From Zygophlyctis sp. KS116 (lineage: Eukaryota; Fungi; Chytridiomycota): a stretch of 32,000 nt of DNA. Positions 1-25,779 of the stretch are shown piece after piece (within the stretch, counting starts at the first letter, position 1; every line of letters begins with the position of its first letter). The DNA lies in the NCBI GenBank assembly GCA_054661495.1, contig BAAFSQ010000012.1:30001-62000 (forward strand), given 5' to 3'. The position numbers and the translations under genes are program-made. Under the pieces are notes generated by a model. The model saw only the letters and a list, made by a program, of their open reading frames with translations, was not told the origin of the DNA and made no database searches.

Positions 1-1295
1 CGGATATAGCTGGGCAGCTATCAATTAAACTGAAATCTGTTAGATTTGTAGATAGTGATTTTGTTTTTTCTATTTTGGATACTTTAGCGCCTTCTTGGAT
101 CTCTAATAATGAAGGCTGGGTAGCGATATCTGGAATGCAATCAGGAAGTTGTCAAAAGATAATGGTAAACAGCTTTACAATATTAAAAAATAGAATCTTA
201 TTTTGCCTTTTGGGGCTACTAGATCCATTTACCAATCAGGGAAATTATGGTTTGTAGAATTCTTTGATCTACGAGATGCTGCTTCTACTGTTGAAAATCT
301 TAATGGAACCGTTTTGCCAGTACTTTTTATTCTATTAATACTAGGGAAATGTAGTTTTGAATATGAGATTACACTTGACTAATGGGAAGAAGTGGGCGCA
401 GCAACAAAACTCTTCAAAGAATTTACGTGCTCTTGTTGATATCTCAAATTTCCAGACCAAAAATTCAAATGTTTCTAAATTTGACAAGGTATGGCAGCCT
501 ATAGGATCATCCTGGAAAACAGCTCAGAACTTGAAGATTGATGAGTCTATTTTGAAAAATGACTGGACATCAAAGAATAGATTAACAGGCAGATTTCTTG
601 AGCCACAAATTCAAAACTATACAAAAGAGGATAAAGAAAACGTCTTTGTTAAATCTGTCGAAAAATCCTTGAATGATTGGGAAGGTTCCCTTGATAGCAT
701 GATTATCAGTGAAGGAGGTCGTATTCAATCAAATGAGATTGACTTTGGATTGATTGGTAAATTACAAATTATAACTTATCTCTGTAGCATCTGGAAAGGA
801 TTTAAGAAGTACATTTATGATTCGAAATATCCCAAACAAGTATACACAGCAAATGTTACTTGATTTTTTGAATGAAACTCACCGTGTAATTACTTTGAAC
901 TAAAATCTTAGGGAACTTTTGATTTTCTTTATCTAAGAATGGACTTTAAAAACAAATGTAATGTTGGCTATGCATTTATAAATGTATTTCTTATTAAAAT
1001 AGTTAAAAAATAGTTTGCAAATCCAAAATCCATTTTATCTCTTGCTGATCGTATTCTTGGAAAAAAATGGAATCAATTTAATTCTGAAAAAGTTGCAACA
1101 CTTTGTTATGCAAATGTTCAAGGACGGGATTCTTTAATTCAAAAATTCCGTAATTCAAGTGTTATGTTGGAGGATTCTAGCTTTAGACCTAAATTGTTTT
1201 ATACTGTTGGCGATCGTGCTGGATCAGAAGAATCATTTCCTATTGGTCCAACTAAACTTAAATCAAAGTCTGATGTTTTATTTCGCCGTGAATAA
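1..1295 (+). CDS. mei2: Mei2-like RNA-binding protein (RRM2 plus Mei2-type RRM3), 5' end outside the window
   Basis: Splicing GT-AG introns 165-193, 320-344, 757-787, 886-911 and 984-1013 gives [10 protein letters not shown] (RRM2) and [52 protein letters not shown]...[19 protein letters not shown], the signature Mei2 RRM3. Stop TAA at 1293-1295. Confidence 0.9.
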
Positions 1296-21638: not shown

Positions 21639-22445
21639 TTAATCATTCATTTTTCCATACCAAGATGATTTGTAGATATTAAGTAAATATAAACAAGTTT
21701 CTAATATTAAATAGAATAAAATACCTTTAATATCACTTGTTTTAACATTAAATATTTTATCTATTCTGTTGTAAAGATTGATTGGATTATTTTTGCTATC
21801 AACTGATTCACCAGGAGTTAATTCTATTGCCATATACCAACATGCAGCTAAAATTGTTTTGAATGGAAAAATGATGCATGCAGGTGTATGAAAACTAAAA
21901 TAAAAATTTAGTAAAATTACCAATCAGAAAATAGTATCCAAGTTAATTGTTTCAAGACTTGAGATGCTTTTATCTTTGAAGCAGACTCTAAAAATTCTGG
22001 AAAAAAATCTTCAATGTCCATATCAAATGTGATTGTTACCAAGACATATTCTTCAAAAAATATGACTGCATCTCTCCATTTTTCCTAAAATTAAATTGAA
22101 CCAACTTACAAATTCTTTATCAGAGAACTCCAGTCCCATAACTTTAGCATATAAGGAAATCAAATCCTTTAATTTAATATGAACATCATAAAGTTTTAAC
22201 GATAAATACAGACAAGCCAGTGCAACTTCTCTAAAGTTATGTCCTTTGAGAGATCGACGCATGTAAAACCGTTGATAAAATATCATGCCAACATGTAGCG
22301 AATGTATTGGAGCTCTAGTGTGCGCACCAACTCTAAAGATAATCAGCGTCCCTTGGCTTCGATCTTTCCATTCTCTTTCAAATGAAATCCCATCTTTCTT
22401 AGAAGGCGAATCTTCTAGCTCTTGTCGAGTGAATAGCCAACTCAT
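21639..22445 (-). CDS. Transcriptional cyclin (cyclin K/T-like)
   Basis: MSWLFTRQELEDSPSKKDGISFEREWKDR, IFYQRFYMRRS, VALACLYLSLK and EEYVLVTITFDMDIE. Introns 22085-22109, 21895-21920 and 21701-21724. Confidence 0.85.
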
Positions 22446-22663: not shown

Positions 22664-25600
22664 ATGAAAAACGATTCTACAAGATCAGATAGGTTAAAGA
22701 GACTATCATCATTAATGAAATCAGAGCCTAATCTGTCTAAACAATCTAACCAGTCATTGATAACGCTAAATTCATCATTTATGCCGCTTTCAAAACCAAT
22801 GCCATTAGTTAGACCAGTATCTGCATCTAAAAGATCTATAACTGAAGCAAAAAGACCAATTTCAGGATCAGTTAGACCTTTATCATCCCAGACATCTCTA
22901 TCAGTCACTTCAAGACCAAAGTCTGCTAAAGCTACAAATTCAATTTCTAACGGGTCATTATCAAGGCCAAAAAAGTCTGTATCGTTTATAAATGCTCAGG
23001 AAAAGTCTAATGATACACTATTCAAGAGATGTCCAACACCTGCTGCAAGTGTCACTTTAGGAGATTTACAAGTTCAAGAAGCGTCAAATGCAATTACAAT
23101 AGAACAGGATCAACGATCGCTTATTGAAATTGATCATGATGAGGCATTGATAGAAGAATCTGAAGATTTTTATGCAAGACTGGAAAATGAGAATGAATAC
23201 TTTCTCACACCCTTTCAAACATATATATATGATGAACTCTATCCAAATTCTGATGATCCAAAAAAATTAGAGACTGATGGGAGTAGGCTGTATATTGCTA
23301 GAGCTATTAGATTAAAACAGGGAATAATTTATGCGGATTTGAAGTTGGCAGTTAATCGGGTCGTCTCGCTTTATCCGATTTTGGAAACGGTATTTTTTAG
23401 AAATGAAAAAATACTGGATGCAGATGTTGTAGGTACATTACCCAGATATAGAGAATGGGACTCAGAATCGGATTTATATTTGGAAAAAATCAATACTGTT
23501 CAAAACTTTGAATTACAAAATTCAGATCCTGAAATACTAGCTGATTTTACTACAAAATGGATGAGGGGTCATTTAAACTTTAACCATCTATTTAAAGTTT
23601 TATTTATTCCTTCAGATCAAAATTCAAATATTTCAGATACCTTGGTTTTTATCGGTGCTAATATTGTACTGGATAGCCTTAGCGTCGCATTTCTTAATCA
23701 AGAAATTATGAATTTATACAGTTCTATTGCTCAATATAGGAAAATGGGGATTGCAGAAAATCGACTTTTTAATTTTCTTTCAAATTATAAAGTAAAGGAA
23801 AAGGCTTCATTTTTGCAATTTTCTCAAGGATGTGTTGACAGTAGGTTTTCAATGGACTTTTGGAGAACGCAATGCATGGAAGCCGTCCAAGAAACAGTCG
23901 AATTTGAAGAACGAGAAGAATTTTTAAAGCAGATAAAGAAACTTGGAATCGAAAAATATAATTTACAAGGGTCAAAGGAAAGTTTAACAAAACGAATGGG
24001 CAATCTGTCAAATGAGCTCAAGAATTTGCTTCAGCAAAGAAAAAAATTAGACAGTGGCATGAATGGAGAAGGCCCGATGACTCACTTTACAGATCCAACA
24101 ACAAAGGAAGTTATGGCGATCAGTGTTGACGCTAAAGATGCATTATTGCAATCGGTTCTTGGAATAGAAGGTAGTAATACCGAGAGCATAGTGTCCTTTT
24201 TGGATAAACACGGTGTTCCCAAAGATGTACAAAGAAAAATCAATGCATCTTCGTTACCAATTGAAACTTTTTCAGAGCTAAATCAGCAATCTCTTGCCAA
24301 TGTTCCAATATTAGCCAGAGAGAGAAGAAAAATATTGGCTTTGGCAGAATATATATCTAGCCGTATTAGGGAAAGTTTCCACGAGCAGCATAAAATCAAA
24401 GGAAACTATGAGCGTAGAATTTTGAAAACAAGGCGTGATTTGGAAAAAGTAAACGACATGCTTGCTGTAGTGAAAGAGCGATTAGAGATCAATGATGATA
24501 TGAATCTGCGACTAAATGCAATCATTAACCCCCCAATTTATGACGAAAGAATTTTACCATTGAACCTGAATACTGTCACAGCTGGTAATTATAACAGTGA
24601 AATCAACTTTAATCAAACATCATATTCTTTTGTCCCTTTTACTGTAAAAGATGAAGTTGTGGTCCAGCTCAGAAATTTTAGAGAAGCATATTTACTATCA
24701 AAACAAAACTCAGCCGGAGGAAAAGATTCCGGATCATCATCGGTTGAAATCATCACATCAGATGAATCTGATTCAGAAAAATTTAACGAAGAAACTCAAA
24801 CTCACAATCGAAAGCTTAGAAATGCAAATTCAGTGTGTATGGCAGCATTTTGTGTTTTGTTGAGGCATATTTCTGGCCAAGATAAATTTTCAATCGGACT
24901 TACTCAATCATATCGATATAGGGATATGCTTGTTGGACCGGTGAGTGATACTGTCCCACTCAAGATTGATCTTACAAAAAAAAGATTGGAATTTCGTTCT
25001 CTATTTTCTAAAATGTATCGGGGAATGTATCATGCACTTCATCAGGGTGCAGCTTGTCCTTTATATAAAATTGCTAAAAAGTATTCTCATGTGGGACACC
25101 TTCCGATTAGATTTGAATATATCTCGTATAAAGAATTTCAACGCTGGCAAAAAGCAGGAATTACTATGGAGGATTTGATGGATGAATCTCTAAATGCTTC
25201 AAATGAAGGGCTTGGATTCACAAAATTATGGACTATGAATGAAAGTGATCCATTTGATTTAAAACTTGTCTTGGTAGAAACGAAAGATTCGATAGAGGGA
25301 GGATTTGTCTATCGGCCAGAAAAGTTTACTCCTTCACAAATTACTAAATGGATGATTAAATTCCAGTCTATTTTATCATCAATTGAATATTCTCAGCGCA
25401 AAATCAGAATATCAACAATGATTTCAAGGTATTTTTGAGTAAATTTAATAATTATAGATTGTACCACTCAATGTGGACTAAAAGCATGGATGGATTATCT
25501 AATACCTTTAGCTTTTCTAGTTTTGCTGATTTGCATACTCCATTGGATTCACGAAATAATTTATCTTCTGATGACGAGAGAGATGAAATAGAAAATAGTC

Positions 25601-25779
25601 AGAATACTCTTGCTGCATCTTCGAATGAATTGAAAGCTACAAAAAGCAGTCTAGAAATCTATGCATCCTTACCATCACTAAATCCAGAAAGACTAAAAAC
25701 CTCACTGCCACCTTCTGATAAACCCCAAAAACAAGTTCAAAGTACAGATACAATTTATCTAGAAAGCTTAAGAATTTAA
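22664..25779 (+). CDS. ~1030-aa protein: basic low-complexity N-terminus plus an NRPS-type condensation-like domain split by a coiled coil/SAM-like/coiled coil insertion
   Basis: 924-aa ORF plus a last exon after intron 25429-25457. C-domain-like blocks: LTPFQTY, AIRLKQGIIYADLKLAVNRVVSLYPILETVF, LFKVLFI, ANIVLDSLSVAFLNQEIMNLY, DFWRTQ // MAAFCVLLRHISGQDKFSIGL, LVGPVSDTVPLKIDL, FDLKLVLVETKDSIEGGFVYRPEKFTPSQITKW. Confidence 0.8.

Follow-up and report, generated by a model that had tools for sequence, protein, structure and literature searches.

Nearly all that is known of condensation (C) domains concerns peptide-synthetase assembly lines, where they catalyse or recruit; the Asp of the HHxxxDG motif and the Arg of the SGR segment pair structurally in them. 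Cy domains, which are without HHxxxDG, use other residues and still catalyse. The X-domain of glycopeptide NRPSs (PDB 4tx2, 4tx3, 6m7l) has a C-type fold with a degenerate motif and works as a protein-recruitment platform. SAM domains, the second fold of concern here, self-associate head-to-tail only in some cases; further binding partners of SAM folds include RNA and other proteins.

Here, a protein combining likeness to these systems was analyzed in a 32,000-nucleotide stretch of DNA (the window) from the lake chytrid Zygophlyctis sp. KS116. The first-pass annotation of the window had described a stand-alone C domain that has lost its active-site histidines and is split by a coiled coil–SAM–coiled coil arm. 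All motifs that it quoted, ANIVLDS and four RPxS words among them, were found where it had placed them. In agreement with its remark that it knew of no described protein with such an architecture, none was found here, and a literature search by topic, locus tags and accession returned no paper on the family.

The gene and its condensation-domain head

The forward-strand ORF from 22664 to 25438 encodes 924 aa, as the ORF list had indicated, but the gene runs further, past a 29-nt intron into a second exon (Table 1). Splicing yields ISR/LYHSMW, in agreement with the family consensus ISR(F/L)YHS(V)W, and the unspliced reading ends in YF-stop. The two exons were searched separately and the spliced junction was translated solely as a frame check. 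Scanned alone against Pfam, exon 2 matched no family; the homologue P0005 has the same C-terminal tail and the same end motif as the exon 2 product. Two short metatranscriptome contigs from two studies touch the gene, for which DNA carry-over is possible; one covers 25492–25662 in exon 2, and neither spans the intron. A chimeric or misassembled gene was ruled out because the reading frame is unbroken and 41 sequences share the entire layout.

Table 1. Features of the gene in window coordinates, with the evidence for each.
Feature	Position	Strand	Evidence and remarks
Exon 1	22664..25428	+	ORF list and splice-site position; unspliced ORF reads to stop at 25438
N-terminal low-complexity tail	22664..23185	+	Ser/Thr-rich, basic; four RPxS words; conserved KKSVSF
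C-domain N-lobe and lobe junction, aa 175-409	23186..23890	+	AF2 secondary structure; VIA; weak NRPS N-lobe profile matches
Degenerate C3 (HHxxxDG) motif, reads ANIVLDS	23657..23677	+	Family alignment column
Outgoing stalk helix, aa 414-463, 50 residues	23903..24052	+	DSSP helix 245-294; block-mean pLDDT ~88-95
Beta-hairpin at tip base, DPxTGExIxIS motif	24056..24124	+	Strands 303-307, 314-318
SAM-like helical bundle, aa 492-572	24137..24379	+	VIA wide search; weak SAM profile matches
Returning stalk helix, aa 573-621	24380..24526	+	DSSP helix 382-452; period 3.5
C-domain C-lobe, aa 626-922	24539..25428	+	Pfam PF00668 aa 694-907; NRPS C-lobe profile matches; VIA
Disordered acidic Ser-rich loop in C-lobe, aa 685-721	24716..24826	+	pLDDT <50 at model residues 518-547
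Intron, 29 nt, GT..AG	25429..25457	+	Family consensus at junction
Exon 2	25458..25779	+	Ser-rich C-terminal tail, ~107 aa; stop 25777-25779

An AlphaFold2 (AF2) model of aa 170–924 (pLDDT 83.3, pTM 0.70) was compared with known structures. In VIA, it matched SrfA-C (8f7g) with a Z of 29.8 and an rmsd of 3.9 Å over 412 of 426 residues (model range 6..754), and Foldseek placed it with C domains at an E of 6e-13. The two-lobed CAT-like fold of PF00668 was found over both lobes by both methods, so that in the model the two sequence halves, as had been proposed, are one complete, stand-alone NRPS-type C domain, with the same fold over its full length as the NRPS C domains (SrfA-C, PDB 8f7g, 2vsq). 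The Pfam check suggested for the halves upheld this for the C-half only: Condensation (PF00668) was matched at aa 694–907 with 53.5 bits against a cut-off of 30.6, over the profile positions 228–433 that make up the C-lobe, whereas the N-half searched alone had no match. No other Pfam domain was found in the protein, and ATPase families were unmatched. The N-lobe region ends in the FWRTQ helix, and the C-lobe has a disordered loop at aa 630–654 besides the acidic one listed in Table 1, which carries a net negative charge and is the least conserved and gappiest region in the family.

Both catalytic histidines are lost, as claimed from the window, and the loss extends to the family: His is absent at both HHxxxDG positions in all 41 aligned members, and the column of the second His holds no conserved substitute. 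The Asp of the motif (D168) is invariant in the same alignment. R582 is nearly invariant in the family and, in the profile search, falls opposite the Arg of the SGR segment in McyB and SrfA-C; judged from sequence, both residues of the structural Asp/Arg pair are therefore kept, and the C-lobe motifs are recognisable. Other nearly invariant polar residues of the head are N78, D83, D85, H566, D600 and K730, which could make up a new site. Since Cy domains lack HHxxxDG and yet catalyse, loss of the motif does not establish inactivity; the protein is probably non-catalytic. Over the whole family, conservation is highest in the SAM-like region and the returning helix, the C-lobe is well conserved, and the N-lobe is among the lowest.

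The best PDB profile match of the protein was the X-domain (E 2.6e-07; VIA Z 25–26). The chytrid protein belongs to no NRPS and is thus not an X-domain: the latter forms part of an NRPS module, retains a single His (HRxxxDD) and lacks an inserted arm. Moreover, the X-domain recruits proteins, whereas we only infer partner binding for the chytrid protein. Compared with NRPS C domains at large, the chytrid protein differs in having no HHxxxDG histidines and no A, PCP or TE partners, in carrying a 210-aa coiled-coil/SAM-like arm in a C-lobe loop, in its long disordered N- and C-terminal tails, and in being eukaryotic and single-copy.

The four RPxS words of the N-terminal tail lie at 22811–22927 and compare with 0.14 expected in the window protein. 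Across 29 non-redundant family tails, 44 RPxS words were observed where 8.9 ± 2.9 were expected, 37 of these 44 being followed at +1 by A, G or S. With Arg at -3 of the repeated RPxS[A/G], the Ser-rich tail is likely to be a target of a basophilic kinase.

An arm inserted in the C-lobe

The ~210-aa arm emerges from the C-lobe at a surface loop that links the FWRxQ helix to an LPxD-type segment; its length is constant at ~220 aa in all 41 members, and it was modelled with high pLDDT. The coordinates proposed for a coiled coil–SAM–coiled coil arrangement agree with those found here, hairpin and bundle together occupying about 24056–24379 between the two helices (Table 1). In the outgoing helix, hydrophobic residues follow a period of 3.5, with a core hydrophobic fraction of 0.63 at a/d positions as compared to 0.12 elsewhere, and the 3.5-residue period is seen in both stalk helices across the family. 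As the arm exits and re-enters one loop, the stalk helices are predicted to pair antiparallel; the stalk length of ~7 nm is an estimate from ~50 residues per helix at 1.5 Å per helical residue. The Asp of DPxTGE in the hairpin is nearly invariant in the family alignment. The last helix of the SAM-like bundle continues into the returning stalk helix, in which E414 and R422 are invariant and K410, R415, I417 and K419 are nearly so.

The assignment of the tip is carried by shape, whereas sequence thresholds were not reached. A wide VIA search over 48,161 chains returned SAM domains for nearly all of the top 50 matches, covering the whole targets with Z of 4.2–6.8 and rmsd of 2.2–3.5 Å over 60–75 residues, which is of middling strength (Z <8). 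In Foldseek against the PDB the best E for the tip was 0.75, with none at or below 0.001; Pfam SAM_2 stayed below its cut-off (E 0.14, 12.8 bits as compared to 20.5), and Pfam SAM families searched on 41 tips gave five sub-threshold matches only, to four SAM-type families. The SAM segment of the first-pass annotation thus holds as a fold but not by sequence, and the model supports the tip as a SAM-like five-helix bundle. The bundle has the same size and topology as the SAM domains of Caskin, CNK/Hyphen, Eph receptors, SLy1, tankyrase and Vts1. Unlike these, it reaches no Pfam SAM threshold, follows a beta-hairpin, has its last helix extended as coiled coil, and is embedded in another domain rather than terminal.

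In its predicted layout only, the protein resembles SMC/Rad50 and the dynein stalk, where an antiparallel coiled coil bearing a small distal domain connects parts of a head that are distant in sequence. The comparison with SMC that had been drawn is a topological analogy, in which two heptad helices of ~50 residues flank a small domain, and does not extend to the head, as the ABC ATPase is absent. Furthermore, the predicted stalk would measure ~7 nm compared with ~50 nm in SMC, the insertion lies in the loop of a single domain and not between ABC half-domains, and there is no homology. By analogy, the dynein stalk, in which a small binding domain is carried on an antiparallel coiled coil by a globular head, may be considered at least as apt a comparison.

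Family distribution and genomic setting

The family comprises ~85 clusters with ~45 named members, which are all annotated as hypothetical, about half of the clusters never having been named; 41 sequences were aligned. Zoosporic fungi of four phyla are the source of every one of the ~45 named members, with many chytrid orders, Gonapodya, Blastocladiomycota and Rozella represented. Outside the family, a HMMER scan of 1.84 billion representatives matched NRPS C-lobes only. A homologue search with the family profile, restricted by a word filter, returned close relatives alone. By shape, the ESM Atlas returned plain C domains aligning over ~430 residues, none of them with the arm, and a search of the same resource by features with the arm as query gave no usable match. 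The supplements of the Rhizoclosmatium developmental atlas have no "Condensation" entry. A single loss in the ancestor of terrestrial fungi could explain the phyletic pattern, which accordingly counts as at most one or two independent events.

The protein holds the sole C domain of the 12.7-Mb genome. The profile search found no adenylation or carrier domain in the gene or anywhere on its contig, which extends the earlier observation that A and T domains are missing from the gene and the window; the genome has two carrier-domain loci at other sites, with PP-binding and AMP-binding matches on other contigs. The HECT and Sec6 neighbours are common to close relatives only and are not found in Spizellomyces or Phlyctochytrium, so that the genomic context yields no functional clue. 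The genome encodes radial-spoke and IFT57 genes, indicating that the organism is flagellated.

Possible roles of the protein

We consider it moderately probable that the protein is a stand-alone, probably non-catalytic member of the C-domain fold serving as a scaffold or adaptor, a reading drawn from anatomy and distribution only and perhaps linked to the zoospore. Following this, we propose that the predicted antiparallel stalk of ~7 nm holds the SAM-like tip at a distance from the head. Being the most constrained parts, the tip and the returning helix would probably make most of the contacts, whether with a partner protein, with the protein itself or with RNA, and the head may act as a second binding module, comparable to the X-domain of glycopeptide synthetases that binds P450s. 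Because its named members all come from fungi with swimming zoospores, the protein is proposed to act during the zoospore stage or as part of a structure specific to zoospores, which is the weakest step of the proposal. A possible but rather doubtful extension is that the C domain was exapted in the ancestor of fungi into a non-enzymatic head on its stalk with a SAM-like tip, that the protein serves the zoospore as a phospho-regulated structural or tethering component, and that it was lost together with swimming spores; the kinetosome or flagellar root, the lipid-microbody complex and the stored ribosome/mRNA mass, taken jointly as candidate sites, are equally tentative.

That the protein is still an enzyme, namely a free-standing C-type acyltransferase or cyclase-like protein whose active site, like that of Cy domains, is non-canonical, would be in line with the complete fold and its recognisable C-lobe motifs, the nearly invariant polar residues of the head, the well conserved C-lobe and the carrier-domain loci elsewhere in the genome. 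However, the position of the catalytic His has no conserved residue of any kind, the N-lobe, which contributes one half of the tunnel, ranks among the parts with least conservation, no A or T partner lies next to this sole C domain of the genome, and the closest PDB sequence profile is that of the inactive X-domain. We therefore regard an enzyme as unlikely, and the same low probability is attached to its elaboration, in which the substrate would be CoA- or carrier-bound and the arm would serve either to bring in the carrier or to position the enzyme in the cell, zoospore lipid bodies being one example.

The tip leaves room for other roles. A non-polymerising, RNA-binding SAM of the Vts1/Smaug type, by which stored mRNAs or ribosomes might be tethered or silenced in the dormant zoospore, is suggested by the presence of the SAM domains of Vts1, Smaug and mitoribosomal mS41 among the structural and profile matches, by the basic start of the last SAM helix (median net charge +4, consensus KDRRK), and by the limitation of the family to zoosporic fungi. 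Additionally, the gene model of one homologue includes a HABP4/PAI-RBP1 mRNA-binding domain, although this may be a merged model. Since protein-binding SAM domains score equally or better and the net charge of the whole SAM-like region is 0, RNA binding appears quite improbable. The flagellar version of the first-pass annotation, a structural part of the flagellar or kinetosome apparatus polymerising via its SAM tip, is in accordance with the flagellated nature of all fungi that contribute named members, with the axonemal and IFT genes of the organism and with the general knowledge that many SAM domains form polymers. Core axonemal proteins are, however, usually common to other flagellated eukaryotes and the HMMER scan found no member of the present family outside fungi, which makes this version unlikely to be correct. 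Of the earlier suggestion, the zoospore part fits the exclusively zoosporic origin of the named homologues.

If the scaffold or adaptor reading is true, the family would plainly illustrate how an enzyme fold can become a structural or adaptor module: the fold is single-copy here, histidine-less and conserved across four zoosporic phyla, and its stalk-and-tip insertion surpasses its own N-lobe in conservation. The exaptation reading, if true, would give the C-domain fold its first cell-biological, non-biosynthetic role. For annotation, automatic labels such as "condensation domain-containing protein" or NRPS-like do not necessarily point to secondary metabolism when given to proteins of early-diverging fungi. 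Finally, the cell biology of fungal zoospores is poorly known, and the family offers it a lineage-specific candidate that is accessible to experiment, genetic tools being available in Spizellomyces.

Gene structure and distribution of the family

Within the gene under study an uninterrupted 924-aa ORF was identified, and all sequence words quoted from it by the first-pass annotation were found in place. It seems to end in ...ISRYF-stop only because a 29-nt GT..AG intron is left unspliced: after splicing, ...ISR is joined to LYHSMW..., the family-wide consensus ISR(F/L)YHS(V)W, and the longer product has the same C-terminal tail as the homologue P0005. Only two metatranscriptome contigs, both short, touched the gene, and no RNA contig crossed the intron; the sequencing runs containing the studied DNA were freshwater metagenomes. 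Database searches were performed with each exon on its own.

A full HMMER scan of 1.84 billion representatives yielded 112 hits, of which approximately 85 covered the whole layout, the remaining matches being giant NRPSs aligned over the C-lobe only; 41 members were aligned. All of the approximately 45 members with organism names derive from zoosporic fungi, namely Spizellomycetales, Rhizophlyctidales, Chytridiales, Rhizophydiales, Cladochytriales and Polychytriales as well as Synchytrium, Caulochytrium, Gonapodya, Allomyces, Blastocladiella, Coelomomyces, Sorochytrium and Rozella. This pattern could be due to a single ancestral loss. Members are annotated as hypothetical or, automatically, as "condensation domain-containing", and JGI record P0022, which its source calls 'flagellar motor switch/type III secretory pathway protein FliN', appears to have been misannotated automatically. 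Neither literature on the family nor an ESM Atlas structure cluster with the arm was found, in agreement with the earlier statement that no described protein of such architecture was known.

Conservation is highest in the SAM-like bundle and the returning helix; the N-lobe ranks among the lowest regions. The N-terminal tails are basic and Ser/Thr-rich with a recurrent RPxS[A/G] word; RPxS was observed 44 times as compared to 8.9 ± 2.9 in shuffles, and occurs in 21 of 29 non-redundant tails. At the C-terminus, the three Blastocladiomycota members shown share an ELRxS(I/L)xxxL-type motif and the lineage of the window carries STDTIYLE(S/N)L(R/K)I; these ends may represent a conserved short helix or docking motif.

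The condensation-domain head and its inserted arm

Pfam recognized Condensation (PF00668) only in the C-half (53.5 bits, cut-off 30.6; profile positions 228-433), and the N-half searched alone matched no Pfam family. The AlphaFold2 model (755 residues; pLDDT 83.3, pTM 0.70), however, matched complete NRPS C domains over their full length, with Z 29.8 and rmsd 3.9 Å over 412/426 residues of SrfA-C (8f7g; model range 6..754), and Foldseek gave E 6e-13. These end-to-end matches show that both halves form one complete two-lobed C domain, as had been proposed. An acidic Ser-rich, disordered loop in the C-lobe, found across the family in variable form, is of SDxSDSE type and resembles casein-kinase-2 sites.

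Features of the gene and its modelled product (model residues refer to the 755-residue AlphaFold2 model)
Feature	Window position (strand)	Residues	Block-mean pLDDT
Cyclin-N-like ORF	22053-22445 (-)		
Spliced gene	22664-25779 (+)	~1028 aa	
Uninterrupted ORF	22664-25438 (+)	924 aa	
Acidic Ser-rich loop	24716-24826		
GT..AG intron	25429-25457		
AlphaFold2 model		aa 170-924	
PF00668 match		aa 694-907	
Outgoing helix		model 245-294	~88-95
Hairpin strands		model 303-307 and 314-318	
Small helical bundle		model 319-375	
Returning helix (71 residues)		model 382-452	84-96

In both long helices hydrophobic residues recur family-wide with a period of 3.5 residues, with core hydrophobic fractions of 0.63 and 0.56 at a/d positions versus 0.12 and 0.23 elsewhere. 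In the profile alignment, FWRxQ...ETV of the family aligns with FWRNHL...ETVLPFDR of the teicoplanin X-domain. FWRxQ precedes the arm and the LP-type segment comes only after it; thus, the arm, with a constant length of approximately 220 aa in 41/41 aligned members, is inserted into a single surface loop where the C-lobe begins. On these topological grounds its two predicted helices must run antiparallel, which at 1.5 Å per helical residue would give a stalk of about 7 nm.

The tip was modelled alone (pLDDT 78) and compared with 48,161 PDB representatives. SAM domains, including those of Caskin2, CNK/Hyphen, EphA5, SLy1, liprin, tankyrase and Vts1, made up nearly all top-50 matches (Z 4.2-6.8, rmsd 2.2-3.5 Å over 60-75 residues, whole targets covered). 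Sequence evidence was weak: SAM_2 matched at E 0.14, the family profile matched SAM structures at E of about 0.35-0.6, Pfam gave scattered sub-threshold matches on the 41 tips, and Foldseek of the tip gave no match at E ≤ 0.001. The segment is best termed SAM-like by modelled fold, short of proven SAM family membership. The first-pass observation is confirmed, and its structural reading is largely right.

Active site, genome context and putative role

Among the 41 aligned members none has His at either HHxxxDG position, which bears out the reported loss of both catalytic histidines, and at the second-His position no residue is conserved. The motif Asp, by contrast, is invariant and the Arg aligned with the canonical SGR Arg nearly so. 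In C domains these two pair structurally, which implies that the scaffold has been kept and the catalytic residue lost. The top PDB profile match of the family is a catalytically inactive NRPS domain, the X-domain.

In the assembly (12.7 Mb, 1175 contigs) the gene is the sole PF00668 match, and PP-binding and AMP-binding matches lie on contigs other than its own, consistent with the earlier remark that gene and window lack adenylation and thiolation domains. Since radial-spoke and IFT57 genes are encoded, the organism is flagellated; tektin had no match in this assembly, due to either assembly incompleteness or real loss.

A cyclin-N-like ORF lies head-to-head immediately upstream of the gene, and the 1508-aa gene model of P0013 (Phlyctochytrium arcticum) carries an N-terminal Cyclin_N domain, so that either the linkage is conserved or a neighbouring gene was merged into the model. 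The models of P0017 (Phlyctochytrium bullatum) and P0032 (Entophlyctis luteolus) contain additional C-terminal domains, HABP4/PAI-RBP1 and mitochondrial carrier, which are probably merged neighbouring genes; the mRNA-binding HABP4/PAI-RBP1 domain would matter if the fusion were real.

The best-supported reading is that of an adaptor or scaffold, in which a head of non-catalytic C fold bears a short antiparallel stalk that presents a SAM-like domain for interactions, and the disordered tails could be targeted by kinases. Its confinement to zoosporic fungi suggests a putative role at the zoospore stage. Alternatively, the head may retain a non-canonical catalysis, the tip may be an RNA-binding SAM, or the protein may be a polymerising flagellar component. 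The protein belongs to a known fold superfamily, in which its architecture is a new variant, and is of relevance to work on NRPS structure as well as to the cell biology of chytrids.
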